64,000 nt of DNA, taken from NCBI GenBank assembly GCA_028826165.1, contig JAPDFW010000074.1:248001-312000 (forward strand). Reading direction: 5' to 3'. Shown one piece after another: positions 25,394-63,768 of the stretch. The first letter of the stretch is position 1. Each line of letters begins with the position of its first letter. The translations under genes were made by a program, and so were the position numbers. The stretch comes from Anaeramoeba ignava BMAN (Eukaryota > Protista > Anaeramoebae). The notes under the pieces are model-generated. The model ran no database searches, was not told where the DNA came from, and worked only from the letters and a program-made list of their open reading frames with translations.

Positions 25394-27985
25394 ATGAAAT
25401 TAATTCTTTTCTTTTCCTTTTTTCTTTTTCTTAATTATCAATATTTTCTTAATTCAATCAAATCAAAATCAAAATCAAAATCAACAAAATTCAATTTCAA
25501 CAATAATTCAAGAATTAGAAACAACAAGATTATTAACAGAAACAACAAGATATTATTCTACTCCAGATGAAGCTTGGATTTGGAATTTATTAGATCAATT
25601 TTCAGGTTCAGGATATTTTGGGCATTCTGTTTCAATTTATGAAGATGTTCTTGTTATTGGTGTTGATGGTGCAAGAAAAGCATTTATTTACAGATATAAT
25701 GGATCAATTTGGAATCAAGAACAAGTTTTGGATAAACCTTTAATTTCAAGTTTTGGGAAGTCTGTTTCAATTTATGAAGATGTTATTGTTATTGGTGCTG
25801 ATTATACAAATCAAGTATTTATTTACAGATATAATGGAACAATTTGGAATCAAGAACAAAATTTCTATGAACCTTTAATTCCATATTTTGGATGGAGTGT
25901 TTCAATTTATGAGAATGTTACTGTTATTGGAACTTATGGTGCAAATCAAGCATTTATTTACAGATATAATGGAACAAATTGGAACCAAGAAGAAAATTTG
26001 AGTGAACCTTCATATTCATATTTTGGATCTTCTGTTTCAATTTATAAAGATGTTATTGTTATTGGAGCTCCTGATGCAAGAAAAGCATATATTTACAGAT
26101 ATAATGAATCAATTTGGAATCAAGAACAAAATTTGAGTGAACCTTTAATTACAAATTTTGGATGGTCTGTTTCAATTTATGAAGATGTTATTGTTATTGG
26201 AGCTCCTGATGCAAAAAAAGCATATATTTACAGATATAATGAACCAATTTGGAATCAAGAAAAATTTTTGAGTGAATCAATTACAAATTTTGGATATTCT
26301 GTTTCAATTTATGGGAATTTTACTGTTATTGGTGCTCCTGATGTAAATAAAGTATTTGTTTATGAAGGTAGTTTCATTCCTCAAGTTAATATTGTTAATT
26401 GTTCATCTTTGTTTTCATTATTTGATTGTTATTGGGATAAAATTCAATCTTCTTTAACATTGATTTATCAAATTAATTATGGATATGATTGGATTGATAT
26501 TGATTCTCCAATTCTTGAAGATGGAAATGTTTATTATCAACAATTTAATTCTTCAATTTATGATAATATTACTGGAAATGAATATTATTCAATTCAAATC
26601 AAAGCTTGTGATATATCAACAATGAAATGTGGTGAATCTTCTTCTTTCATTAATTTAACAACAAAAATTGATTCTGTAAAAAATTTTCAATTATCAAATC
26701 CTTCAAATAATTCAATTAATGTTACTTGGGATTATCCAAATGTTCAGATAAATGAAGGAATTGCTCATCTTAATCATTACAATCTTTCTTATTTCATTCA
26801 ATCTCAACCTGATTTAATATCTTTCATTTCAGTTGATAATTCTTCACTTGATTATTTTTTGAATAATTTAGAATGTGAAAATGATTATAATATTTCAATT
26901 TGTGGATGTAGAACACATGAATGTGAAGGAGATAATAAAGGAGAAATTGTTGAATCATCAATTTCATTATTATTTGGTGAAATTACAAATTTAACATGCT
27001 CAATTTCAAATTCAATAGATATTAATTGTAATTGGAATCAACCAATTAATTGTTCAATTCCATTTTATTATAATTTAACTTATCAATCAATTTATCAAAA
27101 TGATTCAGGAAATTATCAACCAACTTCATCAAATCAACAATTTACAGTTCAAATTCCAAATCAAGAATATCAAATCAATATATCAGCATGTAATTCAAAT
27201 GGAAAATGTGGATATATTTCATCAATTTCAATTAAAACTGATAATTTAACTTCTCCAATAATTTATGAAACAATTTCTAAAATTGAAGAAATTGAATTTA
27301 ATTTCACAAAATTAACAAATGCAAAAAATTATTCAATTTCACTTGATAATGAAACAAATTGGGGAAAATTCACATCTCTTGATTTAAGTGGAAATGAAGT
27401 AATTGGAATAATAAGTGGAATATCAGGAAATATTGAATATAATATTTCAATTCGAGGATGTGTTGATTTAAATTGTGAAACTCCATATTTAGGATTACCT
27501 AGTTCAATTATTTCAACAAGAGCTAAATTAGGAAATATTACTTCATTAAATTGTAATTCATTAATTAATGGATTTGAATGTAGTTGGAATTCATTAATTT
27601 TATCAAGTGGATTAAAAGCATATTCATTTACTTATAATTCAACTTCAATTTGTTTATCAAATTTAACAACAATTTATTCAGTTTCAGGATTAAATGAAGG
27701 AGAATATTATGAAATTTCAATTTATTCATCAGCTGATTTAAATTGTTCATTTAATGAATATTCAGGAATTAATTCAACAACATCAATTACAATATCAACA
27801 ATAAATGAATCTAATAATAATTCAAAAACAACAGCAATAACTTTAGGTATAATTATTCCAATTTTAGTTATTTCAATAATTATTATTGGAATTATTTTCT
27901 ATAAAAGAAAAAAAGAAAATCAAAATCAAAAAAACAAGAAGAAAACAAAGAAGAACAAGAACTTCAAGATAATTTGGATATTTAA
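25394..27985 (+). CDS. Receptor copy A: signal peptide + 6 FG-GAP-like blades + FN3-like stalk + TM; apparent frameshifts near 25430 and near 27905
   Basis: ATG 25394 is homologous to paralogue starts but out of frame with the main ORF by one extra T. The paralogous stop (DNLDI*) at 27985 is in another frame. Confidence 0.75.
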
Positions 27986-28097
27986 TTCCAAATTCAATTT
28001 CAAATTCAATTTCAATTTCCTTCTTTTCATTTTTCTTCAATTTCAAAAATTAAAAAATTAAAATAAAAAATAAAAACAAAATTTCATTCCATTTTTA

Positions 28098-28505
28098 TAT
28101 TTAAATCTAAAACAATAAATTATTATTTTAATAATAAAATTAAATATTAAATTATATTTTTAAATTAATTTATAAATTAAATATTAAATTAAATATATTT
28201 TCATTTTTAATATTTATATGTTAAATATTTAAATAATAAAATATTTAAATCTAAAACATTAAATTATTATTTTAATAATAAAATTAAATATTAAATTATA
28301 TTTTTAAATTAATTTATAAATTAAATATTAAATTAAACTTATTTTTATTTTTTATATTTTTATGTTAAATATTTAAATAATAAAATATTTAGATATAAAA
28401 CAATAAATTATTATTTTAAACATAAAATTAAATATTAAATTATATTTTTAAATTGATTTATAAATTGAATATTAAATTAAATCTATTCTTATTTTTTATA
28501 TTTAC
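28098..28505 (+). repeat. ~145-bp AT-rich satellite, about 3 units
   Basis: Same unit as at 24340, between copies A and B. Confidence 0.8.
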
Positions 28506-28994: not shown

Positions 28995-31724
28995 ATGAAA
29001 TTAATTCTTTTCTTTTCTTTTTCCTTTTTCTTAATTATTAATATTTTCTTAATTAAATCAAATCAAAATCAAAATCAAAATCAACAAAATTCAATTTCCA
29101 CAATAATTCAAGAACTAGAAACAACAAGATTATTAACAGAAACAACAAGATATTATTCTACTCCAGATGAAGCTTGGATTTGGAATTTATTAGATCAATT
29201 TTCAGGTTCAGGATATTTTGGGCATTCTGTTTCAATTTATGGAGATGTTACTGTTATTGGAACTGGTAATGCAAATCAATCATATATTTACAGATATAAT
29301 GGATCAATTTGGAATCAAGAACAAATTTTGAGTGAACCTTCAGCTTCATATTTTGGATCTTCTGTTTCAATTTATGAAGATGTTATTGTTATTGGAGCTC
29401 CTGGTGCAAATCAATCATATATTTACAGATATAATGGAACAATTTGGAATCAAGAACAAATTTTGAGTGAACCTTCAGCTTCATATTTTGGATCTCCTGT
29501 TTCAATTTATGAAGATGTTATTGTTATCGGAGCTCCTGATGCAAGAAAAGCATTTATTTACAGATATAATGGAACAAATTGGAATCAAGAAGAAAATTTG
29601 AGTGAACCTTCATATTCAAATTTTGGATTTTCTGTTTCAATTTATGAAGATGTTATTGTTATTGGAACTTATGGTGCAAATCAAGTATTTATTTACAGAT
29701 ATAATGGATCAATTTGGAATGAAGAACAAGTTTTGGATGAACCTTTAATTTCAAATTTTGGATTTTCTGTTTCAGTTTATGAAGATGTTATTGTTATTGG
29801 AACTTATGGTGCAAATCAAGCATTTATTTACAGATATAATGAATCAATTTGGAATGAAGAACAAATTTTGAGTGAACCTTCATATTCATATTTTGGATGG
29901 TCTGTTTCAATTTATGAAGATGTTATTGTTATTGGAGCTCCTAATGCAAATAAAGCATTTATTTACAGATATAATGAATCAATTTGGAATCAAGAAAAAT
30001 TTTTGAGTGAATCAGCTACAGATTTTGGGAATTCTGTTTCAATTTATGAGAATTTTACTGTTATTGGAGCTTATGTTGCAAATCAAGCATTTGTTTATGA
30101 AGGTAGTTTCATTCCCCAAGTTAATATTCTTAATTGTTCATCTTTGTTTTCATCATTTGATTGTTATTGGGATAAAATTGAATTTCCTTCAACTTTGAAA
30201 TATCAAATTAATTATGGATATGATTGGATTGATATTGATTATCCAATTCTTGAAGATGGAAATGTTTATTATCAACAATTTAATTCTTCAATTTATGATA
30301 ATATTACTGGAAATGAATATTATTCAATTCAAATCAAAGCTTGTGATATATCAACAATGAAATGTGGTGAATCTTCTTCTTTCATTAATTTAACAACAAA
30401 AATTGATTCTGTAAAAGATTTTCAATTATCAAATCCTTCAAATAATTCAATTAATGTTACTTGGAATTATCCAAATGTTCAGATCAATGAAGGAATTGCT
30501 CATCTTAATCATTACAATCTTTCTTATATCATTCAATCTCAACCTGATTTAATATCTTTCATTTCAGTTGATAATTCTTCACTTGATTATCTTTTGAATA
30601 ATTTAGAATGTGAAAATGATTATAATATTTCAATTTGTGGATGTAGAACACAAGAATGTGAAGGAGATGATAAAGGAGAAATTGTTGAATCATCAATTTC
30701 ATTATTATTTGGTGAAGTTACAAATTTAACATGTTCAATTTCAAATTCAATAGATATTAATTGTAATTGGAATCAACCAATTAATTGTTCAATTCCATTT
30801 TATTATAATTTAACTTATCAATCAATTTATCAAAATGATTCTGGAAATTATCAACCAACTTCATCAAATCAACAATTTACAGTTCAAATTCCAAATCAAG
30901 AATATCAAATCAATATATCAGCATGTAATTCAAATGGAAAATGTGGATATATTTCATCAATTTCAATTAAAACTGATAATTTAACATCTCCAATAATTTA
31001 TGAAACAATTTCTAAAATTGAAGAAATTGAATTTAATTTCACAAAATTAATAAATGCAAATAATTATTCAATTTCACTTGATAATGGAACAAATTGGGAA
31101 AAATTCACATCTCTTGATTTAAGTGGAAATGAAATAATTGGAATAATAAGTGGAATATCAGGAAATATTGAATATAATATTTCAATTCGAGGATGTGTTG
31201 ATTTAAATTGTGAAACTCCATATTTAGGATTACCTAGTTCAATTATTTCAACAAGAGCTAAATTAGGAAATATTACTTCATTAAATTGTTATTCATTAAT
31301 TAATGGATTTGAATGTAATTGGAATTCATTAATTTTATCAAGTGGATTAAAAGCATATTCATTTACTTATAATTCAACTTCAATTTGTTTATCAAATCTA
31401 ACAACAATTTATTCAGTTTCAGGATTAAATGAAGGAGAATATTATGAAATTTCAATTTATTCATCAGCTGATTTAAATTGTTCATTTAATCAATATTCAG
31501 GAATTAATTCAACAACATCAATTACAATATCAACAATAAATGAATCTAATAATAATTCAAACACAGCAGCAATAACTTTAGGTATAATTATTCCTATTAT
31601 TGTTATTTCAATAATTATTATTGGAATTATTTTCTATAAGAAGAAAAGAAGAAAACAAATTATCAAAGAAATTATCAAAGAAAACAAAGAAGAACAAGAA
31701 CTTCAAGATAATTTGGATATTTAA
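28995..31724 (+). CDS. Receptor copy B: signal peptide + 7 FG-GAP-like blades + FN3-like stalk + TM + short tail (909 aa)
   Basis: Intact ORF with seven FGxSVSIYxDVIVIG..A..A(F/Y)IYRYN...W repeats, FN3-like W/Y pattern and TM ITLGIIIPIIVISIIIIGIIF. Confidence 0.9.
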   Translation: MKLILFFSFSFFLIINIFLIKSNQNQNQNQQNSISTIIQELETTRLLTETTRYYSTPDEAWIWNLLDQFSGSGYFGHSVSIYGDVTVIGTGNANQSYIYRYNGSIWNQEQILSEPSASYFGSSVSIYEDVIVIGAPGANQSYIYRYNGTIWNQEQILSEPSASYFGSPVSIYEDVIVIGAPDARKAFIYRYNGTNWNQEENLSEPSYSNFGFSVSIYEDVIVIGTYGANQVFIYRYNGSIWNEEQVLDEPLISNFGFSVSVYEDVIVIGTYGANQAFIYRYNESIWNEEQILSEPSYSYFGWSVSIYEDVIVIGAPNANKAFIYRYNESIWNQEKFLSESATDFGNSVSIYENFTVIGAYVANQAFVYEGSFIPQVNILNCSSLFSSFDCYWDKIEFPSTLKYQINYGYDWIDIDYPILEDGNVYYQQFNSSIYDNITGNEYYSIQIKACDISTMKCGESSSFINLTTKIDSVKDFQLSNPSNNSINVTWNYPNVQINEGIAHLNHYNLSYIIQSQPDLISFISVDNSSLDYLLNNLECENDYNISICGCRTQECEGDDKGEIVESSISLLFGEVTNLTCSISNSIDINCNWNQPINCSIPFYYNLTYQSIYQNDSGNYQPTSSNQQFTVQIPNQEYQINISACNSNGKCGYISSISIKTDNLTSPIIYETISKIEEIEFNFTKLINANNYSISLDNGTNWEKFTSLDLSGNEIIGIISGISGNIEYNISIRGCVDLNCETPYLGLPSSIISTRAKLGNITSLNCYSLINGFECNWNSLILSSGLKAYSFTYNSTSICLSNLTTIYSVSGLNEGEYYEISIYSSADLNCSFNQYSGINSTTSITISTINESNNNSNTAAITLGIIIPIIVISIIIIGIIFYKKKRRKQIIKEIIKENKEEQELQDNLDI

Positions 31725-40852: not shown

Positions 40853-40914
40853 TTTTTTTGTTGTTTTTTTAAACAAGAAAAGAAAAAATGAAAAATAAAA
40901 AATAAAAAAATGAA

Positions 40915-41460
40915 AAATAAGAATAGATTTAATTTAATATTTAATTAATAAATTAATTTAAAAATATAATTTAATATTTAATTTTATGTTTAAAATAATA
41001 ATTTATTGTTTTAAATTTAAATATTTTATTATTTAAATATTTAACATAAAAATATAAAAAATAAGAATAGGTTTAATTTAATATTCAATTAATAAATTAA
41101 TTTAAAAATATAATTTAATATTTAATTTTATTATTAAAATAATAATTTAATGTTTTGAATTTAAATATTTTATTATTTAAATATTTAACATATAAATATA
41201 AAAATGAGAATAGATTTAATTTAATATTCAGATTTATAAATTAATTTAAAAATATAATTTAATATTTAATTTTATGTTTAAAATAATAATTTAATGTTTT
41301 AGATTTAAATATTTTATTATTTAAATATTTAACATATAAATATAAAAAATAAGAATAGATTTAATTTAATATTTAATTAATAAATTAATTTAAAAATATA
41401 ATTTTATATTTAATTTTATGTTTAAAATAATAATTTATTGTTTTAGATTTAAATATAAAA
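40915..41460 (-). repeat. ~145-bp AT-rich satellite, about 4 units (reverse orientation)
   Basis: Reverse complement of the unit at 24340, downstream of copy C. Confidence 0.8.
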
Positions 41461-44819: not shown

Positions 44820-46090
44820 TAAATATAAAAAATAAGAATAGATTTAATTTAATATTCAATTTATAAATTAATTTAAAAATATAATTTAATATTTAATTTT
44901 ATGTTTAAAATAATAATTTATTGTTTTATATTTAAATATTTTATTATTTAAATATTTAACATAAAAATATAAAAATAAGAATAGATTTAATTTAATATTT
45001 AATTTATAAATTAATTTAAAAATATAATTTAATATTTAATTTTATGTTTAAAATAATAATTTATTGTTTTATATTTAAATATTTTATTATTTAAATATTT
45101 AGCATATAAATATAAAAATGAAAATAGATTTAATTTAATATTTAATTTATAAATTAATTTGGAAATATAATTTAATATTTAATTTTATGTTTAAAATAAT
45201 AATTTAATGTTTTAGATTTAAATATTTTATTATTTAAATATTTAGCAAATAAATATAAAAATGAGAATAGATTTAATTTAATATTCAATTTATAAATTAA
45301 TTTAAAAATATAATTTAATATTTAATTTTATGTTTAAAATAATAATTTAATGTTTTAGATGTAAATATTTTATTATTTAAATATTTAACATAAAAATATG
45401 AAAAATAAGAATAGATTTAATTTAATATTTAATTTAAAAATTAATTTAAAAATATAATTTAATATTTAATTTTATTATTAAAATAATAATTTATTGTTTT
45501 AAATCTAAATATTTTATTATTTAAATATTTAGCATATAAATATAAAAATGAAAATAAATTTAATTTAATATTTAATTTATAAATTAATTCAAAATAATAA
45601 TTTAATATTTAATTTTATTATTAAAATAATAATTTGTTTTAAATCTAAATATTTTATTATTTAAATATTTAACATAAAAATATGAAAAATAAGAATAGAT
45701 TTAATTTAATATTTAATTTATAAATTAATTTAAAAATATAATTTAATATTTAATTTTATGTTTAAAATAATAATTTATTGTTTTAGATGTAAATATTTTA
45801 TTATTTAAATATTTAACATAAAAATATGAAAAATAAGAATAGATTTAATTTAATATTCAATTTATAAATTAATTTAAAAATATAATTTAATATTTAACTC
45901 TATTATTAAAATAATAATTTAATGTTTTAGATTTAAATATTTTATTATTTAAATATTTAACATATAAATATAAAAAATAAGAATAGATTTAATTTAATAT
46001 TTAATTTATAAATTAATTTAAAAATATAATTTAATATTTAATTTTATTATTAAAATAATAATTTATTGTTTTAGATTTAAATATAAAAGT
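44820..46090 (-). repeat. ~145-bp AT-rich satellite, about 9 units
   Basis: Tandem units between copies D and C. Confidence 0.85.
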
Positions 46091-48921: not shown

Positions 48922-49627
48922 TTTTGCTTTGTTTTGTTAACTATTTTTGAATTAAAAATAAATAGAAAATTAATAAAATAAGTTTATTTTTTGTGTTTAT
49001 TTTGTGTTTATTAATTAAAAAATATTTTTTTTCTTACTTTTTTGTTTTTGTTTTTGTTTTTGTTTGAAAGAAAAAAAGAATGAAAGAAGGAAAGAAAAAA
49101 ATGATTAATTTTTTTATTTAATTAAATTTGAAAAAAAAAATTTTTTTTTTTGTTTATTTTTTTAATTAAAAAATTGAATAAATGAATTTAAAATTAAATT
49201 TAAATTATATTTTAGGAATAATTTTTTATTATTAATTAATGATAATTTCTATTTAAATTAATGAAATAAATTTTAATTTAAATTTTTCAAAAAAAAAGAA
49301 AAAGAAATTTAATAATAATTTAATAATAATTTAATAATAATTTAATAATAATTTAATAATAAAAAGAAAGAGAATTTTATTTCTAATTTAATCTAAATTA
49401 AATCTAAATTAAATCTAAATTAAAAATTGAAAAAAAAAATTTTTTTTTTTGTTTATTTTTTTAATTAAAAAATTGAATAAATGAATTTAAAATTAAATTT
49501 AAAATATATTTTAGGAATAATTTTTTATTATTAATTAATGATAATTTCTATTTAAATTAATGAAATAAATTTTAATTTAAATTTTTCAAAAAAAAAGAAA
49601 AAGAAATTTAATAATAATTTAATAATA

Positions 49628-51215
49628 TACTAAAGTAAAAAAACCGAACCATAGTAAAAAACCCGAACCAAAAAATTTTCATTTTTTTTTTCAATTTCAA
49701 AATTTTTGTTATTTTTTTTATGGAACAAGAAAGAAAGAACTTTATTAATCAACTTCTCGCCTTAAGAAAAACCAGAAAATTGAATTCAAAACCTGAAAAG
49801 GCTGTTTTTATCTATGAAGAATCGAAAAAGCAAAATTTTCCATTATCAATAAATTTCATCTCCCAAGAGTTGAATATCTCCAGTTCGCAGATAAAACGAG
49901 CCCTCAAAGCAAAAAGAGAAGGAAGAGAGATAGGTCAAAAGGGGAGACCACCAAAATTAAATCAAAAAGAACAAAAAAAATTAAAACAACAAATTGAAGA
50001 CTTAACAGACGAGGGAAAATCAATGACAATAACAGAAGTATTCAACAGTGCAAATGAAATGATTTCAAAGAGGAAAAAATACACAGAGTTAAAAGAAAAT
50101 GTGGAAATGAATCAAATTCAATCAAAACAATGGATTTATTATTTTACTAAAACAAATCAACTTAAAACTGCCACAGCTAAAGAATTGGAAACAAAACGAA
50201 GAGAGGTATCAAAAGAAGAAGTTTCATGTTTCTTTGCAATTGTCAGAAATCTTCTAGAAAAAAATGGATCTTATCAACCAAGTTTAATCATTAATGCAGA
50301 TGAAACAATGGTGAAATTAGGAAACAAAACAAAAGTACAAGTAGTAACTTCAAAAAAAAAAGAAAAACCTATAAGAGAAAGAAAACAAATTCAAAAGCAT
50401 TTGACTGCAATGTGTGGGATTTCAGCAGATGGAAAATTTTTGAAACCATTAATGATACTACCAACTAAGACCTTACCTAGAGAAACATTTGAGAAGTCAC
50501 AATCTATATATAGTTTTAATTATCATCATGGATCAAAAGGATTCATAAACAGGCCAGTTTTTGAGGATTGGATCAGAGATACATTAATTCCTTTTGTAAT
50601 TAAACAAAGAGGAGATTCATCTGAAAGGGCATTATTAATTCTTGATGGACATGTTAGTCGTGAGAGTGTAATAGCTATTGAGAGTCTCCAAAAAAATTCT
50701 ATTGATACTATCATTCTTCCAGCACATGCTTCTCATTTACTTCAACCACTTGATGTACTCCCTTTTTCGACTTTCAAAAGATTATTAGCACAGGAAAAGA
50801 ATTTAGATTCTTTAGAGGGTCTTTTAGAAGCAATTGAAAATTGTCTTCATATTGCTTTTTCTCCAAGATCTGTTCGTCAAGCTTTTTCAAGAGCAGGAAT
50901 TTTTCCTTTAGAAGAAGAGAAAATCTTAAAACATGAATTCTTGATAGAAGAGAAGAAAAAGCCTAAAGATTCCCCTCATCAAAAAAAAAGGATTGATATC
51001 AGTAATAGTTTATTGACAGATGGTTTAGTCATTGAAAAATTATTAGAAAGACAAAAAAAACTTCAAACCAAAAAGAATTCTCCAAAAAAAAGAAGAATAT
51101 CAAAAAAAAAAAGAAAATCAAAATCAAAAAAATAAATCAAATCAAAAAGAACTTTTTTTTCTTTTTTTATTTTGGTTCGGGTTTTTTACGATGGTTCGGT
51201 TTTTTTACTTTAGTA
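49628..51215 (+). mobile_element. pogo-family (Tc1/mariner superfamily) DNA transposon, 1588 bp, 46-bp TIRs, TA target-site duplication
   Basis: TIR TACTAAAGTAAAAAAACCGAACCATAGTAAAAAACCCGAACCAAAA at 49628-49673 and its reverse complement (1 mismatch) at 51170-51215. TA at 49626-27 and 51216-17; the empty site is visible in the paralogous region near 60040-60070. Confidence 0.93.
49720..51135 (+). CDS. DD35D transposase (DDE_1/CENP-B-pogo type)
   Basis: GRPPKL and N-terminal HTH-like region; INADET, LILDGH and LQPLD with 35 residues between the 2nd and 3rd Asp; basic NLS-like C-terminus. Confidence 0.92.
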   Translation: MEQERKNFINQLLALRKTRKLNSKPEKAVFIYEESKKQNFPLSINFISQELNISSSQIKRALKAKREGREIGQKGRPPKLNQKEQKKLKQQIEDLTDEGKSMTITEVFNSANEMISKRKKYTELKENVEMNQIQSKQWIYYFTKTNQLKTATAKELETKRREVSKEEVSCFFAIVRNLLEKNGSYQPSLIINADETMVKLGNKTKVQVVTSKKKEKPIRERKQIQKHLTAMCGISADGKFLKPLMILPTKTLPRETFEKSQSIYSFNYHHGSKGFINRPVFEDWIRDTLIPFVIKQRGDSSERALLILDGHVSRESVIAIESLQKNSIDTIILPAHASHLLQPLDVLPFSTFKRLLAQEKNLDSLEGLLEAIENCLHIAFSPRSVRQAFSRAGIFPLEEEKILKHEFLIEEKKKPKDSPHQKKRIDISNSLLTDGLVIEKLLERQKKLQTKKNSPKKRRISKKKRKSKSKK

Positions 51216-51339
51216 TAATTTAATAATAAAAAGAAAGAGAATTTTATTTCTAATTTAAATCTTAATTAAATCAAAATTAAATCTAAATTAAATCTAAATT
51301 AAAAATTGATTCAAATTTATATCTTTTTTTTCTTTTTGT

Positions 51340-52610
51340 AAATATAAAAAATAAGAATAGATTTAATTTAATATTTAATTTATAAATTAATTTAAAAATA
51401 TAATTTAATATTTAATTTTATTATTAAAATAATAATTTATTGTTTTAAATTTAAATATTTTATTATTTAAATATTTAACATAAAAATATAAAAAATAAGA
51501 ATAGATTTAATTTAATATTTAATTTATAAATTAATTTGGAAATATAATTTAATATTTAATTTTATGTTTAAAATAATAATTTATTGTTTTAGATGTAAAT
51601 ATTTTATTATTTAAATATTTAACACAAAAATATAAAAATAAGAATAGATTTAATTTAATATTCAATTAATAAATTAATTTGAAAATATAATTTAATATTT
51701 AATTTTATGTTTAAAATATTAATTTAATGTTTTGAATTTAAATATTTTATTATCTAAATATTTAACATAAAAATATGAAAAATAAGAATAGATTTAATTT
51801 AATATTTAATTTATAAATTAATTTAAAAATATAATTTAATAATTAATTTTATTATTAAAATAATAATTTGTTTTAAATCTAAATATTTTATTATTTAAAT
51901 ATTTTAACATATAAATATAAAAATAAGAATAGATTTAATTTAATATTCAATTTATAAATTAATTTAAAAATATAATTTAATATTTAATTTTTATGTTTAA
52001 AATAATAATTTATTGTTTTAAATCTAAATATTTTATTATTTAAATATTTAGCATATAAATATAAAAATAAGAATAAATTTAATTTAATATTTAATTTATA
52101 AATTAATTTAAAAATATAATTTAATATTTAATTTTATGTTTAAAATAATAATTTATTGTTTTAGATTTAAATATTTTATTATTTAAATATTTAACATATA
52201 AATATAAAAATAAGAATAGATTTAATTTAATATTCAATTTATAAATTAATTTAAAAATATAATTTTATATTTAATTTTATTATTAAAATAATAATTTATT
52301 GTTTTTAGATCTAAATATTTTATTATTTAAATATTTAACATATAAATATAAAAATAAGAATAGATTTAATTTAATATTTAATTTATAAATTAATTTAAAA
52401 ATATAATTTTATATTTAATTTTATTATTAAAATAATAATTTATTGTTTTAGATCTAAATATTTTATTATTTAAATATTTAACATATAAATATAAAAAATA
52501 AGAATAGATTTAATTTAATATTTAATTTATAAATTAATTTAAAATTATAATTTTATATTTAGTTTTATGTTTAAAATAATAATTTATTGTTTTAGATTTA
52601 AATATAAAAA
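51340..52610 (-). repeat. ~145-bp AT-rich satellite, about 9 units
   Basis: Tandem units downstream of copy E. Confidence 0.85.
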
Positions 52611-52722: not shown

Positions 52723-55459
52723 TTAAATATCTAAATTATCTTGAAGTTCTTGTTCTTCTTCGTTTTCTTTGATAATTTCTTTGATAATTTGTTTTCTTCT
52801 TTTTTTCTTCTTATATAAAATAATTCCAATAATAATTATTGAAATAACAATAATTGGAATAATTATACCTAAACTTATTGATGTTATTTTTGAATTATTA
52901 TTAGGTTCATTTATTGTTAATATTGTAATTGATGTTGATGAATTAATTCCTGAATATTCATTAAATGAACAATTTAAATCAGCTGATGAATAAATTGAAA
53001 TTTCATAATATTCTCCTTCATTTAATCCTGAAGAAACTGAATAATTTGTTGTTAAATTTGTTAAGCAAATTGAAGTTGAATTATAAGTAAATGAATATGC
53101 TTTTAATCCACTTGATAAAATTAATGAATTCCAATTACATTCAAATCCATTAATTATTGAATTACAATTTAATGAAGTAATATTTCCTAATTTAGCTCTT
53201 GTTGAAATAATTGAACTTGGTAATCCTAAATATGGAGTTTCACAATTTAAATCTGAACATCCTCGAATTGAAATATTATATTCAATATTTCCTGATATTC
53301 CACTTATGATTCCAATTACTTCATTTCCACTTAAATCAAGAGATGTGAATTTTCCCCAATTTGTTTCATTATCAAGTGAAATTGAATAATTATTTGCATT
53401 TGTTAATTTTGTGAAATTAAATTCAATTTCTTCAATTTTGGAAATTGTTTCATAAATTATTGGAGATGTTAAATTATCAGTTTTAATTGAAATTGATGAA
53501 ATATATCCACATTTTCCATTTGAATTACATGCTGATATATTGATTTGATATTCTTGATTTGGAATTTGAACTGTAAATTGTTGATTTGATGAAGTTGATT
53601 GATAATTTCCTGAATCATTTTGATAAATTGATTGATAAGTTAAATTATAATAAAATGGAATTGAACAATTAATTGGTTGATTCCAATTACAATTAATATC
53701 TATTGAATTTGAAATTGAACATGTTAAATTTGTAATTTCACCAAATAATAATGAAATTGATGATTCAACAATTTCTCCTTTATCATCTCCTTCACATTCT
53801 TGTGTTCTACATCCACAAATTGAAATATTATAATCATTTTCACATTCTAAATTATTCAAAAAATAATCAAGTGAAGAATTATCAACTGAAATGAAAGATA
53901 TTAAATCAGGTTGAGATTGAATGATATAAGAAAGATTATAATGATTAAGATGAGCAATTCCTTCATTGATTTGAACATTAGGATAATTCCAAGTAACATT
54001 AATTGAATTATTTGAAGGATTTGATAATTGAAAATCTTTTACAGAATCAATTTTTGTTATTAAATTAATAAAAGAAGAAGATTCACCACATTTCATTGTT
54101 ACATTATCACAAGCTTTGATTTGAATTGAATAATATTCATTTCCAGTAATATTATCATAAATTGAAGAATTAAATTGTTGATAATAAACATTTCCATCTT
54201 CAAGAATTGGAGAATCAATATCAATCCAATCATATCCATAATTAATTTGATATTTCAAAGTTAAAGAAGATTGAATTTTATCCCAATAACAATCAAATAA
54301 TGAAAATAAAGATGAACAATTAACAATATTAACTTGAGGAATGAAACTACCTTCATAAACAAATACTTGATTTGCAACATAAGTTCCAATAACAGTAAAA
54401 TTTCCATAAATTGAAACAGAATTCCCAAAATTTGTAGCTGATTCACTCAAAAATTTTTCTTCATTCCAAATTGATTCATTATATCTGTAAATATATGCTT
54501 TATTTGCATAACGAGCTCCAATAACAATAACATCTTCATAAATTGAAACAGAATATCCAAAATATGTAGCCGATTGATTCAAAATTTGTTCTTCATTCCA
54601 AATTGATTCATTATATCTGTAAATAAATACTTTTTTTGCAGCATAATCTCCAATAACAATAACATCTTTATAAATTGAAACACTCCATCCAAAATATGAA
54701 GCTGAAGGTTTATTCAAATTTTGTTCTTGATTCCAAATTGATTCATTATATCTGTAAATAAATGCTTTTCTTGCATAATAAGTTCCAATAACAATAACAT
54801 CTTTATAAATTGAAACAGAATCCCCAAAATATGGAATTGAAGGTTCACTCAAAACTTGTTCTTCATTCCAAATTGTTCCATTATATCTGTAAATAAATGC
54901 TTTTCTTGCATCAGAATAAGTTCCAATAACAATAACATCTTTATAAATTGAAACAGAATTCCCAAAAAATGTAATTGAAGGTTCATCCAAAACTTGTTCT
55001 TGATTCCAAATTGATTCATTATATCTGTAAATATATGTTTTACTTGCATAATCAGCACCAATAACAATAACATCTTTATAAATTGAAACAGAATTTCCAA
55101 AATATGAAGCTGAAGGTTCACTCAAAATTTGTTCTTCATTCCAAATTGATTCATTATATCTGTAAATATATGCTTGATTTGCACCAAAAGCACCAATAAC
55201 AAGAACATCTTCATAAATTGAAACAGAATCTCCAAAATATCCTGAACCTGAAAATTGATTTAATAAATTCCAAATCCAAGCTTCATCTGGAGTAGAATAA
55301 TATCTTGTTGTTTCTGTTAATAATCTTGTTGTTTCTAATTCTTGAATTATTGTTGAAATTGAATTTTGTTGATCTTGGTTTTGATCTTGATTTTGATTGA
55401 ATTAAGAAAATATTGATAATTAAGAAAAAGGAAAAGGAAAAGAAAAGAATTAATTTCAT
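52723..55459 (-). CDS. Receptor copy E (7 blades) with a +1 frameshift near 55392, just after the signal peptide
   Basis: ATG at 55459 is homologous to paralogues; CAATCAAAATCAAGAT has one extra A versus CAATCAAATCAA; the downstream ORF is open to 52723. Confidence 0.8.
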
Positions 55460-55974
55460 TTTTGTTTTGTTTTGTTAACTATATTTAAATTAAAAATAAA
55501 TAGAAAATTAATAAAATAAGTTTATTTTTGTGTTTATTTTGTGTTTATTAATTAAAAAATATTTTTTTTCTTACTTTTTTGTTTTTGTTTTTGTTTTTGT
55601 TTGAAAGAAAAAAAGAATGAAAGAAGAAAAAATGATTAATTTTTTTATTTAAAAAATTGAGAAAAAAAAATGATTATTTTTTTAATTAAAAAATTGAATA
55701 AATGAATTTAAAATTTAAATTAAAATATATTTTAGGAATAATTCTTTATTATTAATTAATGATAATTTCTATTTAAATTAATGAAATAAATTTTAATTTA
55801 AATTTTTCAAAAAAAAAAGAAAGAAAGAAATTTAATAATAATTTAATAATAATTTAATAAGAAAAAGAAAGAGAATTTTATTTCTAATTTAATTATTAAT
55901 TAAATCTAAATTAAATCTAAATTAAATCTAAATTAAAAATTTGATTCAAATTTATACATTTTTTTCTTTTTGTA

Positions 55975-56525
55975 AATATAAAAATAAGAATAGATTTAAT
56001 TTAATATTTAATTTATAAATTAATTTAAAAATATAATTTAATATTTAATTTTATGTTTAAAATAATAATTTATTGTTTTAGATGTAAATATTTTATTATT
56101 TAAATATTTAACATAAAAATATAAAAATAAGAATAGATTTAATTTAATATTTAATTTATAAATTAATTTAAAAATATAATTTAATATTTAATTCTATTAT
56201 TAAAAAAATAATTTATTGTTTTAGATTTAAATATTTTATTATTTAAATATTTAACATATAAATATAAAAATGAAAATAGATTTAATTTATATTTAATTTA
56301 TAAATTAATTTAAAAATATAATTTAATATTTAATTTTATGTTTAAAAAAATAATTTAATGTTTTAGATTTAAATATTTTATTATTTAAATATTTAACATA
56401 TAAATATAAAAAATAAGAATAGATTTAATTTAATATTCAATTTATAAATCAATTTAGAAATATAATTTAATATTTAATTTTATTATTAAAATAATAATTT
56501 AATGTTTTAGATTTAAATATAAAAG
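55975..56525 (-). repeat. ~145-bp AT-rich satellite, about 4 units
   Basis: Tandem units downstream of copy F. Confidence 0.8.
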
Positions 56526-56619: not shown

Positions 56620-59355
56620 TTAAATATCCAAATTATCTTGAAGTTCTTGTTCTTCTTTGTTTTCTTCTTGCTTTTTTGGTTTTGATTTTTTTCTTTTTTT
56701 CTTTTTATAGAAAATAATTCCAATAATAATTATTGAAATAATAACAATAATTGGAATAATTATACCTAAAGTTATTGCTGTTGTTTTTGAATTATTATTA
56801 GGTTCATTTGTTGTTGATATTGTAATTGATGTTGTTGAATTAATTCCTGAATATTCATTAAATGAACAATTTAAATCAGCTGATGAATAAATTGAAATTT
56901 CATAATATTCTCCTTCATTTAATCCTGAAGAAACTGAATAATTTGTTGTTAAATTTGTTAAGCAAATTGAAGTTGAATTATAAGTAAATGAATATGCTTT
57001 TAATCCACTTGATAAAATTAATGAATCCCAATTACATTCAAATCCATTAATTAATGAATTACAAATTAATGAAGTAATATTTCCTAATTTAGTTCTTGTT
57101 GAAATAATTGAACTAGGTAATCCTAAATATGGTGTTTCACAATTTAAATCTGAACATCCTCGAATTGAAATATTATATTCAATATTTCCTGATATTCCAC
57201 TTATTATTCCAATACCTTCATTTCCACTTAAATCAAGAGATGTGAATTTTTCCCAATTTGTTTCATTATTAAGTGAAATTGAATAATTATTTGCATTTGT
57301 TAATTTTGTGAAATTAAATTCAATTTCTTCAATTTTGGAAATTGTTTCATAAATTATTGGAGATGTTAAATTATCAGTTTTAATTGAAATTGATGAAATA
57401 TATCCACATTTTCCATTTGAATTACATGCTGATATATTGATTTGATATTCTTGATTTGGGAATTGAACTGTAAATTGTTGATTTGATGAAGTTGGTTGAT
57501 AATTTCCTGAATCATTTTGATAAATTGATTGATAAGTTAAATTATAATAAAATGGAATTGAACAATTAATTGGTTGATTCCAATTACAATTAATATCTAT
57601 TGAATTTGAAATTGAACATGTTAAATTTGTAATTTCACCAAATAATAATGAAATTGATGATTCAACAATTTCTCCTTTATCATCTCCTTCACATTCTTGT
57701 GTTCTACATCCACAAATTGAAATATTATAATCATTTTCACATTCTAAATTATTCAAAAAATAATCAAGTGAAGAATTATCAACTGAAATGAAAGATATTA
57801 AATCAGGTTGAGATTGAATGAAATAAGAAAGATTATAATGATTAAGATGAGCAATTCCTTCATTGATTTGAACATTAGGATAATCCCAAGTAACATTAAT
57901 TGAATAATTTGAAGGATTTGATAATTGAAAATCTTTTACAGAATCAATTTTTGTTGTTAAATTAATGAAAGAAGAAGATTCACCACATTTCATTGTTACA
58001 TTATCACAAGCTTTGATTTGAATTGAATAATATTCATTTCCAGTAATATTATCATAAATTGAAGAATTAAATTGTTGATAATAAACATTTCCATCTTCAA
58101 GAATTGGAGAATCAATATCAATCCAATCATATCCATAATTAATTTGATATTTCAAAGTTAAAGAAGATTGAATTTTATCCCAATAACAATCAAATAATGA
58201 AAACAAAGATGAACAATTAACAATATTAACTTGAGGAATGAAACTACCTTCATAAACAAATGCTTTATTTGCAACATAAGCTCCAATAACAGTAAAATTC
58301 TCATAAATTGAAACAGAATATCCAAATTGTGAAGCTGATTCACTCAACATTTTTTCTTGATTCCAAATTGATTCATTATATCTGTAAATAAATGCTTTTC
58401 TTTCATCAGTAGCTCCAATAACAATAACATCTTCATAAATTGAAACAGAACATCCAAAAGTTGAATATGAAGGTTCACCCAAAACTTGTTCTTCATTCCA
58501 ATTTGTTCCATTATATCTGTAAATAAATACTTTTCTCGCATATAAAGTTCCAATAACAATAACATCTTCATAAATTGAAACAGAATATCCAAAATTTGAA
58601 GATGAAGGTTCATAGAAATTTTCTTCTCGATTCCAAATTGATTCATTATATCTGTAAATAAATGCTTGGCTTGTATAATCAGTTCCAATAACAATAACAT
58701 CTTTATAAATTGAAACACTCCATCCAAAATATGAAACAGAAGGTTCATAGAAATTTTCTTCTTGATTCCAAATTGTTCCATTATATCTGTAAATAAATGC
58801 TTTTCTTGCATCACGAGCTCCAATAACAATAACATCTTCATAAATTGAAACAGAATTCCCAAAATATGAAGCTGAAGGTCCATTCAAAATTTGTTCTTGA
58901 TTCCAAATTGATCCATTATATCTGTAAATATATGCTTTATTTGCACCAAAAGCTCCAATAACAATAACATCTTCATAAATTGAAACAGAATTCCCAAAAT
59001 TTGAAGCTGAAGGTCCATCCAAAACTTGTTCTTGATTCCAAATTGTTCCATTATATCTGTAAATATATGCTTGATTTGCACCAAAAGCACCAATAACAAG
59101 AACATCTTTATAAATTGAAACAATCCATCCAAAATATCCTGAACCTGAAAATTGATCTAATAAATTCCAAATCCAAGCTTCATCTGGAGTAGAATAATAT
59201 CTTGTTGTTTCTGTTAATAATCTTGTTGTTTCTAATTCTTGAATTATTGTGGAAATTGAATTTTGTTGATTTTGATTTTGATTTTGATTTGATTGAATTA
59301 AGAAAATATTGATAATTAAGAAAAAGGAAAAAGAAAAGAAAAGATTTAATTTCAT
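56620..59355 (-). CDS. Receptor copy F (7 blades, 911 aa, intact)
   Basis: Full ORF with the same architecture as copy B. Confidence 0.9.
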   Translation of the reverse strand: MKLNLFFSFSFFLIINIFLIQSNQNQNQNQQNSISTIIQELETTRLLTETTRYYSTPDEAWIWNLLDQFSGSGYFGWIVSIYKDVLVIGAFGANQAYIYRYNGTIWNQEQVLDGPSASNFGNSVSIYEDVIVIGAFGANKAYIYRYNGSIWNQEQILNGPSASYFGNSVSIYEDVIVIGARDARKAFIYRYNGTIWNQEENFYEPSVSYFGWSVSIYKDVIVIGTDYTSQAFIYRYNESIWNREENFYEPSSSNFGYSVSIYEDVIVIGTLYARKVFIYRYNGTNWNEEQVLGEPSYSTFGCSVSIYEDVIVIGATDERKAFIYRYNESIWNQEKMLSESASQFGYSVSIYENFTVIGAYVANKAFVYEGSFIPQVNIVNCSSLFSLFDCYWDKIQSSLTLKYQINYGYDWIDIDSPILEDGNVYYQQFNSSIYDNITGNEYYSIQIKACDNVTMKCGESSSFINLTTKIDSVKDFQLSNPSNYSINVTWDYPNVQINEGIAHLNHYNLSYFIQSQPDLISFISVDNSSLDYFLNNLECENDYNISICGCRTQECEGDDKGEIVESSISLLFGEITNLTCSISNSIDINCNWNQPINCSIPFYYNLTYQSIYQNDSGNYQPTSSNQQFTVQFPNQEYQINISACNSNGKCGYISSISIKTDNLTSPIIYETISKIEEIEFNFTKLTNANNYSISLNNETNWEKFTSLDLSGNEGIGIISGISGNIEYNISIRGCSDLNCETPYLGLPSSIISTRTKLGNITSLICNSLINGFECNWDSLILSSGLKAYSFTYNSTSICLTNLTTNYSVSSGLNEGEYYEISIYSSADLNCSFNEYSGINSTTSITISTTNEPNNNSKTTAITLGIIIPIIVIISIIIIGIIFYKKKKRKKSKPKKQEENKEEQELQDNLDI

Positions 59356-60184: not shown

Positions 60185-60870
60185 TAAATATAAAAATAAG
60201 AATAGATTTAATTTAATATTTAATTTATAAATTAATTTGGAAATATAATTTAATATTTAATTTTATGTTTAAAATAATAATTTATTGTTTTAGATTTAAA
60301 TATTTTATTATCTAAATATTTAACATAAAAATATAAAAATAAGAATAGATTTAATTTAATATTTAATTTATAAATTAATTTAAAAATATAATTTAATATT
60401 TAATTTTATTATTAAAATAATAATTTAATATTTTAGATTTAAATATTTTATTATTTAAATATTTAACAAATAAATATAAAAATAAGAATAGATTTAATTT
60501 AATATTTAATTTATAAATTAATTTAATAATTAATTCTATGTTTAATTTTATGTTTAAAATAATAATTTAATGTTTTAAATTTAAATATTTTATTATTTAA
60601 ATATTTAACAAATAAATATAAAAAAATAAGAATAGATTTAATTTAATATTTAATTATATTTTTAAATTAATTTAATAATTAATTCTATGTTTAAAATAAT
60701 AATTTATTGTTTTAGATTTAAATATTTTATTATTTAAATATTTAACATATAAATATAAAAAATAAAAATAGGTTTAATTTAATATTTAATTTATAAATTA
60801 ATTTAAAAATATAATTTAATATTTAATTTTATTATTAAAATAATAATTTATTGTTTTAGATTTAAATATA
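60185..60870 (-). repeat. ~145-bp AT-rich satellite, about 5 units
   Basis: Tandem units downstream of copy G. Confidence 0.8.
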
Positions 60871-60981
60871 AAAATAGAATGAAATTTTGTTTGTGATTTT
60901 TATTTTCTTTTTTTAATTTTTGAAATTGAAGAAAAATGAAAAGAAGGAAATTGATTCGAAAAATGAAAATTGAAATTGGAA

Positions 60982-63768
60982 TTAAATATCTAAATTATCT
61001 TGAAGTTCTTGTTCTTCTTCGTTTTCTTTGATAATTTCTTTGATAATTTGTTTTCTTCTTTTTTTCTTCTTATAGAAAATAATTCCAATAATAATTATTG
61101 AAATAATAACAATAATTGGAATAATTATACCTAAACTTATTGATGTTATTTTTGAATTATCATTAGATTCATTTGTTGATGATATTGTAATTGATGTTGA
61201 TGAATTAATTCCTGAATATTCATTAAATGAACAATTTAAATCAGCTGATGAATAAATTGAAATTTCATAATATTCTCCTTCATTTAATCCTGAAGAAACT
61301 GAATAATTTGTTGTTAAATTTGTTAAGCAAATTGAAGTTGAATTATAAGTAAATGAATATGCTTTTAATCCACTTGATAAAATTAATGAATTCCAATTAC
61401 ATTCAAATCCATTAATTAATGAATTACAAATTAATGAAGTAATATTTCCTAATTTAGCTCTTGTTGAAATAATTGAACTAGGTAATCCTAAATATGGAGT
61501 TTCACAATTTAAATCTGAACATCCTCGAATTGAAATATTATATTCAATATTTCCTGATATTCCACTTATGATTCCAATTATTTCATTTCCACTTAAATCA
61601 AGAGATGTGAATTTTCCCCAATTTGTTTCATTATTAAGTGAAATTGAATAATTATTTGCATTTGTTAATTTTGTGAAATTAAATTCAATTTCTTCAATTT
61701 TAGAAATTGTTTCATAAATTATTGGAGATGTTAAATTATCAGTTTTAATTGAAATTGATGAAATATATCCACATTTTCCATTTGAATTACATGCTGATAT
61801 ATTGATTTGATATTCTTGATTTGGGAATTGAACTGTAAATTGTTGATTTGATGAAGTTGATTGATAATTTCCTGAATCATTTTGATAAATTGATTGATAA
61901 GTTAAATTATAATAAAATGGAATTGAACAATTAATTGGTTGATTCCAATTACAATTAATATCTATTGAATTTGAAATTGAACATGTTAAATTTGTAATTT
62001 CACCAAATAATAATGAAATTGATGATTCAACAATTTCTCCTTTATCATCTCCTTCACATTCTTGTGTTCTACATCCACAAATTGAAATATTATAATCATT
62101 TTCAGATTCTAAATTATTCAAAAAATAATCAAGTGAAGAATTATCAACTGAAATGAAAGATATTAAATCAGGTTGAGATTGAATGAAATAAGAAAGATTA
62201 TAATGATTAAGATGAGCAATTCCTTCATTGATTTGAACATTTGGATAATCCCAAGTAACATTAATTGAATTATTTGAAGGATTTGATAATTGAAAATCTT
62301 TTACAGAATCAATTTTTGTTGTTAAATTAATGAAAGAAGAAGATTCACCACATTTCATTGTTACATTATCACAAGCTTTGATTTGAATTGAATAATATTC
62401 ATTTCCAGTAATATTATCATAAATTGAAGAATTAAATTGTTGATAATAAACATTTCCATCTTCAAGAATTGGAGAATCAATATCAATCCAATCATATCCA
62501 TAATTAATTTGATATTTCAGAGTTGAAGGAAATTCAATTTTATCCCAATAACAATCAAATAATGAAAACAAAGATGAACAATTAAGAATATTAACTTGGG
62601 GAATGAAACTACCTTCATAAACAAATACTTTATTTGAACCATAAGTTCCAATAACAGTAAAATTTCCATAAATTGAAACAGAATTCCCAAAATTTGTAGC
62701 TGATTCACTCAAAAATTTTTCTTGATTCCAAATTGATTCATTATATCTGTAAATATATGCTTTATTTGCATAACGAGCTCCAATAACAATAACATCTTCA
62801 TAAATTGAAACAGAATATCCAAAATATGTAGCCGATTGATTCAAAATTTGTTCTTCATTCCAAATTGATTCATTATATCTGTAAATAAATACTTTTTTTG
62901 CAGCATAATCTCCAATAACAATAACATCTTTATAAATTGAAACACTCCATCCAAAATATGAAGCTGAAGGTTCATCCAAAACTTGTTCTTCATTCCAAAT
63001 TGATTCATTATATCTGTAAATAAATGCTTTTCTTGCATAATAAGTTCCAATAACAATAACATCTTTATAAATTGAAACAGAATCCCCAAAATATGGAATT
63101 GAAGGTTCACTCAAAACTTGTTCTTCATTCCAAATTGTTCCATTATATCTGTAAATAAATGCTTTTCTTGCATCAGAATAAGTTCCAATAACAATAACAT
63201 CTTTATAAATTGAAACAGAATTCCCAAAAAATGTAATTGAAGGTTCATCCAAAACTTGTTCTTGATTCCAAATTGATCCATTATATCTGTAAATATATGC
63301 TTTACTTGCATAACGAGCTCCAATAACAATAATATCTTCATAAATTGAAACAGACTTCCCAAAATATGAAATTGAAGGTTCATCCAAAATTTGTTCTTGA
63401 TTCCAAATTGATCCATTATATCTGTAAATATATGCTTGATTTGCACCAAAAGCACCAATAACAAGAACATCTTTATAAATTGAAACAGAATCTCCAAAAT
63501 ATCCTGAACCTGAAAATTGATCTAATAAATTCCAAATCCAAGCTTCATCTGGAGTAGAATAATATCTTGTTGTTTCTGTTAATAATCTTGTTGTTTCTAA
63601 TTCTTGAATTATTGTTGAAATTGAATTTTGTTGATCTTGATTTTGATTTTGATTTTGATCTTGATTTTGATTTTGATTTTGATCTTGATTTTGATTTTGA
63701 TTTGATTGAATTAAGAAAATATTAATAATTAAGAAAAAGAAAAAAGAAAAGAAAAGAATTAATTTCAT
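60982..63768 (-). CDS. Receptor copy G (7 blades, 928 aa, intact)
   Basis: Full ORF with the same architecture and an expanded NQ/DQ tract after the signal peptide. Confidence 0.9.
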   Translation of the reverse strand: MKLILFFSFFFFLIINIFLIQSNQNQNQDQNQNQNQDQNQNQNQDQQNSISTIIQELETTRLLTETTRYYSTPDEAWIWNLLDQFSGSGYFGDSVSIYKDVLVIGAFGANQAYIYRYNGSIWNQEQILDEPSISYFGKSVSIYEDIIVIGARYASKAYIYRYNGSIWNQEQVLDEPSITFFGNSVSIYKDVIVIGTYSDARKAFIYRYNGTIWNEEQVLSEPSIPYFGDSVSIYKDVIVIGTYYARKAFIYRYNESIWNEEQVLDEPSASYFGWSVSIYKDVIVIGDYAAKKVFIYRYNESIWNEEQILNQSATYFGYSVSIYEDVIVIGARYANKAYIYRYNESIWNQEKFLSESATNFGNSVSIYGNFTVIGTYGSNKVFVYEGSFIPQVNILNCSSLFSLFDCYWDKIEFPSTLKYQINYGYDWIDIDSPILEDGNVYYQQFNSSIYDNITGNEYYSIQIKACDNVTMKCGESSSFINLTTKIDSVKDFQLSNPSNNSINVTWDYPNVQINEGIAHLNHYNLSYFIQSQPDLISFISVDNSSLDYFLNNLESENDYNISICGCRTQECEGDDKGEIVESSISLLFGEITNLTCSISNSIDINCNWNQPINCSIPFYYNLTYQSIYQNDSGNYQSTSSNQQFTVQFPNQEYQINISACNSNGKCGYISSISIKTDNLTSPIIYETISKIEEIEFNFTKLTNANNYSISLNNETNWGKFTSLDLSGNEIIGIISGISGNIEYNISIRGCSDLNCETPYLGLPSSIISTRAKLGNITSLICNSLINGFECNWNSLILSSGLKAYSFTYNSTSICLTNLTTNYSVSSGLNEGEYYEISIYSSADLNCSFNEYSGINSSTSITISSTNESNDNSKITSISLGIIIPIIVIISIIIIGIIFYKKKKRRKQIIKEIIKENEEEQELQDNLDI

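Follow-up and report, generated by a model that had tools for sequence, protein, structure and literature searches.

An expanded family of candidate surface receptors with a hypervariable FG-GAP_2 propeller head and a constant FN3 stalk in Anaeramoeba ignava

Results

The genome of A. ignava encodes what looks like an undescribed, inherited receptor repertoire for a variety of external targets, for example bacteria. We analysed a window of 64,000 nt that carries seven paralogues, G1 to G7, all found where the original prediction had placed them and sharing an architecture of signal peptide, FG-GAP_2 propeller, five FN3 domains, transmembrane (TM) helix and short tail. The simple tandem array that had been proposed does not hold, as G1 (25394..27985) and G2 (28995..31724) lie on the forward strand and G3 (41558..44294), G4 (46186..48921), G5 (52723..55459), G6 (56620..59355) and G7 (60982..63768) on the reverse strand, with about 9.8 kb of unrelated genes between the two groups and a DDE transposon splitting G4 from G5. 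Four of the seven, G2 (909 aa), G4 (911 aa; P0002, our reference copy), G6 (911 aa) and G7 (928 aa), are uninterrupted ORFs, whereas the other three are frameshifted as assembled. The frameshifts, of one base each, are found in the leader (about 25407-25430) and tail (about 27912-27935) of G1, at the boundary of blades 1 and 2 of G3 (about 43950-43970) and in the leader of G5 (about 55383-55402); all sit at homopolymer runs and may reflect either assembly error or pseudogenes. G1 has six blades owing to a 135-nt deletion.

Every copy in the window is flanked on both sides by a 143/144-bp AT-rich satellite, present as unstranded arrays upstream of G1 (24340..24892, 3.8 copies), between G1 and G2 (28097..28504, 2.8 copies), downstream of G3 (40902..41456, 3.9 copies), between G3 and G4 (44821..46084, 8.8 copies), downstream of G5 (51339..52605, 8.8 copies), between G5 and G6 (55973..56520, 3.8 copies) and between G6 and G7 (60185..60869, 4.8 copies), and as a single copy near 31936, downstream of G2. 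The DDE_1 transposon between G4 and G5 (49584..51259, forward strand; transposase ORF 49720-51135) has 90-nt inverted repeats that are 78% complementary and is probably a passenger.

Across the seven genes we counted 48 FG-anchored blades of 44-46 aa, in agreement with the claimed length of about 45 aa. The FG-GAP_2 model (PF14312) matched at 100-127 bits against a gathering cut-off of 23, in seven stretches per head (G1 and the G3 ORF have six each), and a closed seven-bladed propeller, the fold originally proposed, was predicted by AlphaFold (pLDDT 97.7, pTM 0.94). The closest solved folds to the head model are integrin-alpha heads (Z 35.9, rmsd 2.5-2.7), and a sequence search of the PDB gave weak matches only. 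In G4 the head spans 47803..48738 on the reverse strand, with FG codons starting at 48699, 48564, 48429, 48294, 48159, 48027 and 47892; the other heads lie at 25578-26378 (G1), 29178-30113 (G2), 44111-43178 (G3, seven blades), 55275-54340 (G5, seven blades), 59172-58237 (G6) and 63537-62602 (G7). The AB loop has two residues in every blade.

The stalk of G4 (46345..47802, reverse strand) comprises five FN3-like domains under purifying selection and is followed by the TM helix, a basic stop-transfer stretch and the short tail (46186..46344, reverse strand); the corresponding parts of G2, on the forward strand, are 30114-31568 for the stalk and 31569-31724 for TM and tail. Two tail types alternate among the copies. 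The G4 tail ends in an acidic-hydrophobic motif (D/N-L-D-I), and no catalytic domain was found in it. A tail this short and free of any enzyme points to capture that leads on to uptake or trafficking, and less to direct signalling.

Amino acid identity among the seven paralogues is 76% in the head and 96% in both leader and stalk, which are near-invariant as claimed, whereas TM and tail, at 82%, are not. Alignment and entropy of the blades placed the variable residues listed in the original prediction at fixed blade positions. Across 29 loci, entropy reaches 3.1 bits at FG+1, 2.6 at FG-1 and 2.6-2.7 at IG+2 and IG+3, against 0-0.3 bits at the framework positions F, G, S, Y, YRYN and W, and sites above 2 bits number 33 of 308 in the head and 2 of 477 in the stalk. 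Each 135-nt blade of the G4 head has four hypervariable, positively selected codons (FG-1, FG+1, IG+2 and IG+3), and 195 distinct top-face signatures were counted among 214 blades of the family. These sites map to the FG-GAP/cage end of the blades, as had been expected, where top-face assignment follows DSSP topology and the published cage motif; the outer strand D, off the top face, also carries a few sites that are selected or toggle. FG-GAP_2 propellers in general, those of bacteria among them, vary at fixed positions; special to the A. ignava family are the measured selection, the blade shuffling and the size of the expansion.

In the seven genes, pN and pS were 0.135 and 0.042 in the head and 0.019 and 0.035 in the stalk, so that synonymous divergence is alike in the two parts and head pN is seven times stalk pN. 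For the top loops, with loop classes set by topology, NG86 ratios were 8.8 (CI 4.5-29.6) in five window genes and 4.35 (3.2-6.1) in 28 loci. Base composition at four-fold sites is 97.6% AT, and neutrality alone pushes NG86 upward here: neutral AT-biased simulations gave 1.1-1.75 for the top loops, and about 1.5 for the stalk, where 0.57-0.76 was observed. MG94 with an equilibrium of 97.6% AT returned 3-6 for the top face and 0.34-0.45 for the stalk. In our own implementation of the likelihood, M2a was preferred over M1a and neutrality rejected at all seven blade positions (2dlnL 40-93, omega 3.0-4.6), compared with 2dlnL of 0.3-9.1 in stalk windows; recombination can inflate site-model tests of this kind, an effect that weighs less on the pairwise estimates, which need no tree. 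The codon analyses covered 28 loci plus G1 and G3 of one A. ignava strain, and a long-blade subfamily was compared as protein only. The top-face signal survives the controls for AT bias, and dN/dS is well above 1 and concentrated at top-face sites, the outcome on which the original prediction depended.

Internal blades are interchangeable between positions: for blades 2-6 the mean distance is 20.7 nt at the same position, 21.3 nt at different positions and 18.7 nt within a gene, and near-identical blade pairs are mostly neighbours. The genes are mosaics, with a significant incompatibility-distance test in the heads (p 0.0005), detected MaxChi breakpoints, and head and stalk trees that reject each other in the AU test. 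Since the variable codons are mostly NNT, mutagenesis of the kind performed by diversity-generating retroelements was considered. A target of this kind is ruled out by framework adenines, synonymous ones included, that are near-invariant across the 48 blades, and such mutagenesis is also disfavoured by head pS being about equal to stalk pS; no reverse transcriptase was found among the window ORFs scanned.

Genome-wide, a large family was recovered: close members number about 75 and wider ones at least 150, spread over many contigs, the first FN3 domain being common to at least 150 loci. We observe an expanded family of well over 100 genes in an anaerobic amoeba, with a head that varies on one face and a constant stalk. 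The EukProt A. ignava set, the names of which suggest derivation from transcripts, also contains distant members, and no member was found outside A. ignava. Our paper searches found no description of the propeller-FN3 family. In the Anaeramoeba genome paper, recognition by receptors is given as an open factor behind symbiosome specificity, the family is left undescribed and FG-GAP is mentioned only for three transfer candidates in the supplement (PMC11550330).

Discussion

We favour, with a probability of roughly 60%, a germline, lineage-specific birth-and-death repertoire of single-pass surface receptors or adhesins, probably for microbial surfaces. Many paralogues, omega above 1 on the top face, purifying selection elsewhere and recombination were all found, as in birth-and-death families. 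A prokaryote-type FG-GAP_2 propeller, whose prokaryotic origin we infer, would be carried on a glycosylated FN3 stalk and present about four freely exchangeable residues per blade on the cage-motif face (rich in Tyr, Asn, Gly, Asp, Ser and Trp), which would give each protein a putative binding surface made up of about 28 variable residues. Over evolutionary time, diversity may arise in three ways: by duplication of gene units that the satellite brackets, by unequal crossing-over and gene conversion among the 135-nt blade repeats, which are nearly identical both within a gene and from one gene to another, and by diversifying selection on top-face codons. Surface location and ligand binding are predicted, and the most likely targets would be varied bacterial surface structures of prey, symbionts or pathogens.

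Positive selection by itself cannot separate a receptor from a target, and the foremost alternative, although unlikely, is that these proteins form a coat or adhesin with one shared job, the exposed face of which diversifies to escape viruses, parasitic bacteria or predators. The constant stalk and short tail would fit this explanation, as would the Legionellales symbiont with Dot/Icm hosted by A. pumila. However, the variation is centred on cage-motif positions, a contact face in integrins, where it binds the beta subunit; 39% of it is aromatic, and the bottom loops, which are also exposed, are near neutral (NG86 1.1, 28 loci), whereas under escape one would sooner expect scattered changes or a preference for charged residues.

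Less probable still is self/non-self or mating-type recognition between amoebae in the manner of TgrB1/TgrC1, either homophilic or through heterophilic pairs. The single-pass repeat-stalk architecture, the recombination and the gene birth and death do resemble Dictyostelium tgr loci (PMC12745789). As a rule, however, allorecognition depends on one or two loci with polymorphic alleles, while the diversity here lies among more than 100 paralogues on many contigs of one genome. No social stage is known in Anaeramoeba.

Variation within the lifetime of a lineage is comparably improbable. On this reading, the family would be an actively recombining, clonally varied repertoire of a unicellular eukaryote, whose 135-nt blade cassettes move between copies bracketed by the satellite and choose the bacteria eaten or admitted to the symbiosome, a form of anticipatory recognition on a propeller scaffold. 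Slightly more doubtful is a VSG- or VLR-like version, in which one or few copies are expressed and rewritten by conversion from an archive including frameshifted copies, with the satellite, taken at 144 bp, as recombination boundary. While mosaic heads, interchangeable blades, frameshifted copies and the satellite around every window copy are consistent with it, all seven copies have full-length bodies and near-identical full upstream flanks, no arrays of free blade cassettes were seen, and several distant members occur together in one transcript-derived set. Furthermore, the satellite occurs throughout the genome (556 candidates), and around 21 other family loci a search out to 1.5 kb did not find it. 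We found no sign of somatic assembly from cassettes.

A neutral by-product of relaxed constraint on tolerant loops and conversion in an AT-rich genome, or of polishing artefacts in a nanopore R9 assembly corrected with Pilon, is very improbable despite the base composition and upward NG86 bias noted above, as the ratios are several-fold above the simulated neutral range, the excess recurs at the same four codons of every blade, codons rich in GC are frequent at FG+1 (TGG in 32 of 214 blades), and nanopore errors are homopolymer indels rather than codon-specific substitutions.

How free-living protists discriminate prey, symbionts and pathogens is largely unknown, and the proposed germline repertoire is a concrete, testable candidate. 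The small, stable head with its defined set of about 28 variable residues may also be regarded as a natural scaffold for variable binders. In addition, recently amplified FG-GAP propellers, reported from prokaryotes, are now extended to a eukaryote.

Comparison with known systems

With integrin alpha the family shares a seven-bladed FG-GAP propeller, an elongated beta-sandwich stalk and one TM helix, and its hypervariable sites are the integrin cage-motif positions, where FG and G are kept and the cage aromatics and Pro vary. Identity with integrin alpha is nonetheless rejected, as the heads have no DxDxDG calcium loops between strands 1 and 2, GFFKR is absent from all seven tails and an FN3 stalk replaces the thigh and calf legs; near-identical blades, hypervariable cage positions and more than 100 paralogues further set the family apart. 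A search for integrin beta (PF00362) gave no match in the genome, although the control searches gave none either; no Anaeramoeba gene appears in the PANTHER integrin-beta row, and alpha5beta1 is reported missing.

Prokaryotic and phage FG-GAP_2 proteins (PF14312) belong to the same Pfam family and share its framework and high internal blade identity, and in bacterial heads the same four positions vary with a similar Tyr bias. The closest outside heads come from a phage-like contig and a Phycisphaerales contig. Compared with these proteins, the A. ignava blades are shortened from about 56 to 45 aa, with most of the BC loop lost in all seven, lack the conserved Asp at FG-2 and are fused to an FN3 stalk specific to A. 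ignava. Highly repetitive FG-GAP propellers have been reported, in a survey, only from archaea and bacteria (PMC9218822).

The Dictyostelium tgr genes, whose known role is allorecognition through allelic polymorphism, are likewise a large amoebal family of single-pass, repeat-stalk proteins shaped by duplication, recombination and birth and death. Their stalk, however, consists of Ig-like IPT/TIG repeats, unlike a propeller with FN3 domains. Lamprey VLRs, TALEs and other repeat-based binders also combine shuffling with a constant framework in which each repeat varies at a few residues on one face, whereas the A. ignava head is a closed toroid of a fixed seven repeats encoded by germline paralogues. 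Propeller lectins of innate immunity are soluble proteins whose sugar-binding pockets lie between the blades, whereas the A. ignava heads are predicted to be membrane-bound and vary on the central top face. Tachylectin-2, PVL and the VCBS supercluster are related propellers that often bind carbohydrates (PMC8023676), and positive selection has been reported for coral tachylectin-2 (PMC2880987).

Results

The prediction of seven intronless paralogues in this stretch (20% GC) stood as to number, with G1 (25394-27985) and G2 (28995-31724) on the forward strand and G3 (44294-41558), G4 (48921-46186), G5 (55459-52723), G6 (59355-56620) and G7 (63768-60982) on the reverse strand, together encoding 48 blades of 44-46 aa, but only G2, G4, G6 and G7 are uninterrupted ORFs as assembled. 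One-base indels at homopolymer runs interrupt G1 (two), G3 and G5, and G1 is short of one 135-nt blade. Since the Anaeramoeba ignava assembly derives from nanopore R9 data, with Racon, Nanopolish and Pilon used for polishing (PMC11550330), these indels are plausibly assembly errors.

Pfam detected seven FG-GAP_2 repeats and fn3. In the full-length predicted model, an N-terminal hydrophobic helix precedes a seven-blade head (pLDDT 92-98), which is followed by five beta-sandwich domains and then a TM helix. Modelled alone, the head reached pLDDT 97.7 and pTM 0.94, in agreement with the propeller fold originally proposed; its best structural matches were integrin-alpha heads (Z 35.9, rmsd 2.5-2.7, 307 residues), with WD40 propellers ranking just below. 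The tails, of about 30 residues, contain neither an enzyme nor GFFKR, and 37 of 69 family proteins terminate in D/N-L-D-hydrophobic. An N-glycosylation sequon lies in the stretch between strands C and D (CD loop region) of 173 of 183 blades.

Identity among G1-G7 is 96% in the leader, 76% in the head, 96% in the stalk and 82% in the TM and tail, so that the constancy claimed for leader and stalk holds but that of the TM region does not fully. Within the head, variation is concentrated at fixed sites, as had been claimed: across 29 loci, entropy peaks in every blade at the residue after FG (FG+1, 3.1 bits) and at FG-1, IG+2 and IG+3 (2.6-2.7 bits). These four sites yield 195 distinct signatures among 214 blades and consist of Tyr (27%), Asn (12%), Gly (9%), Asp (9%), Ser (8%) and Trp (5%), with aromatics in all amounting to 39%. 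In integrins, the FG-GAP/cage face binds both the beta subunit and ligand. In the predicted model, DSSP assigns the four sites to the point where the DA loop ends and strand A begins and to the BC loop, and they coincide with positions of the integrin FG-GAP/cage motif, which lies at the other end of the blade from the calcium loops (PMC3192720; PMC8023676). Because bacterial and metagenomic FG-GAP_2 heads vary at the same four sites with a similar Tyr bias, fixed-site variability alone is a trait of the FG-GAP_2 family.

Selection was assessed against the base composition. Among G1-G7, pS of the head (0.042) nearly equals that of the stalk (0.035), whereas pN differs sevenfold (0.135 vs 0.019). 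Since four-fold sites are 97.6% AT, neutral evolution was simulated under this bias, giving NG86 dN/dS ratios of 1.05-1.75. Observed ratios for the top loops were far higher: five window genes gave 8.8 (CI 4.5-29.6) and 28 loci gave 4.35 (3.2-6.1). The bottom loops (28 loci) stood at 1.1 and the stalk at 0.57-0.76; even without choosing sites, the whole head gave 3.5 and 2.2. Tree-free MG94 estimates put the top loops at 3-6, the strands near 1 and the stalk at 0.34-0.45. The site model with positive selection (M2a) was preferred over M1a in all seven blade alignments (2dlnL 40-93, omega 3.0-4.6), as against 2dlnL of 0.3-9.1 in six stalk windows; recombination can inflate this test, and the pairwise results are concordant with it. 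FG-1, FG+1 and the BC-loop tip were flagged in all seven alignments. Some strand-D positions were flagged as well.

The family genes are mosaics. G5 and G7 match exactly in blades 3 and 5, with 11 nt differing in blade 2; G3 and G6 share an identical blade 6 while blades 1-3 are 15-21 nt apart; and the nearest relative of G4 is G7 over the first FN3 domain and G6 over the tail. Incompatibility grows with distance (p 0.0005 for heads, 0.0015 for stalks), MaxChi detected breakpoints (15 tests, nominal), and head and stalk trees mutually reject each other. Blades 1 and 7 stay position-specific; for about half of blades 2-6 the nearest neighbour occupies a different position (distance 21.3 nt to other positions vs 20.7 to the same position and 18.7 within the same gene). 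Adjacent blades make up seven of nine near-identical intragenic pairs, as unequal crossing-over predicts. DGR-type mutagenesis is ruled out by the invariant framework adenines.

Upstream flanks of the copies are 78-97% identical. A 143/144-bp satellite (example unit 51361-51504, about 3% GC, near nucleosome length) flanks both sides of all seven copies in constant orientation relative to the gene and brackets three loci elsewhere (L006-L008). As it is dispersed genome-wide in short arrays (556 candidates, 92-99% identity) and no copy turned up close to 21 other family members, we only suggest that it could be a duplication substrate. The window also holds a DDE_1 transposon with inverted repeats (49584-51259), which has a near-identical but broken copy on another contig (C71).

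Neighbouring genes include an RCC1-BTB gene upstream of G1 (22348-24171); elsewhere, the predicted protein P0048 joins a family member to RCC1-BTB, a fusion that may be a gene-model artefact. An SRP receptor alpha gene (33653-35850; SRP54_N and GTPase) carries a Hint/homing-endonuclease intein at the P-loop, its frame being interrupted by a short AT-rich intron-like stretch directly before the first Cys of the intein. Two actin-fold ORFs adjoin each other on the reverse strand at 35969-38331, and a sucrose-phosphorylase-like (GH13) gene that is split into at least two pieces (16049-18079) is likely a bacterial transfer.

Genome-wide, at least 150 loci (184 candidates) match the first FN3 domain, at least about 74 of them at ≥73% identity, and there are at least 1010 candidate FG-GAP_2 repeats. 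Stalk length varies from a single FN3 domain to more than 20. The P0121-P0152 set includes proteins with double heads, several with GPI-signal-like hydrophobic tails, and a second subfamily with 56-aa blades; P0126 and its relatives, named 'integrin alpha-l' at source, have the same stalk. All 19 strong stalk matches looked up were from A. ignava, and no A. flamelloides protein was among the named or checked hits. The EukProt set contains several distant family members under transcript-like names, an indirect sign of expression in the wider family; of the window copies checked, none was in that set.

Discussion

The head is likely of prokaryotic origin. Its nearest relatives outside A. ignava lie on a Phycisphaerales contig and a phage-like 33-kb metagenomic contig, the latter encoding a repetitive FG-GAP_2 propeller (L031:5001-6758) with near-identical blade frameworks and the same variable sites. 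That contig also carries dUTPase, ribonucleotide reductase and a PD-(D/E)XK nuclease. Blades of the window subfamily measure 45 aa, compared with about 56 aa in prokaryotes and the other subfamily, each blade having lost the greater part of the BC loop. Short blades of different proteins share 58% identity, as against 42% between short blades and long ones of A. ignava. The pattern is consistent with a single shortened blade having been re-amplified, as is known to happen in propellers (PMC9218822).

A diversifying propeller-FN3 surface family is real and well supported, and from its features we infer recognition of microbial surfaces, to which we assign a probability of roughly 0.62. That the variation instead serves evasion seems unlikely, and a role in self recognition more unlikely still; clonal or somatic variation of the VLR or VSG kind is a slimmer prospect than either. 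A neutral or artefactual origin is very improbable. None of the results that would have contradicted the original proposal was seen: the variable sites are not scattered, top-loop omega exceeds 1 and a propeller is predicted.

The family is not integrin alpha, as calcium loops, legs and GFFKR are all absent; a search for integrin beta gave no match, with controls equally silent. Our literature search found no paper describing the A. ignava propeller-FN3 family; in the supplement to the genome paper, FG-GAP transfer candidates number three for A. ignava and zero for A. flamelloides (PMC11550330). Recognition of microbial surfaces would place it beside germline recognition repertoires shaped by birth-and-death and diversifying selection, which work similarly, and its nearest amoebal parallel is Dictyostelium tgr (PMC12745789).
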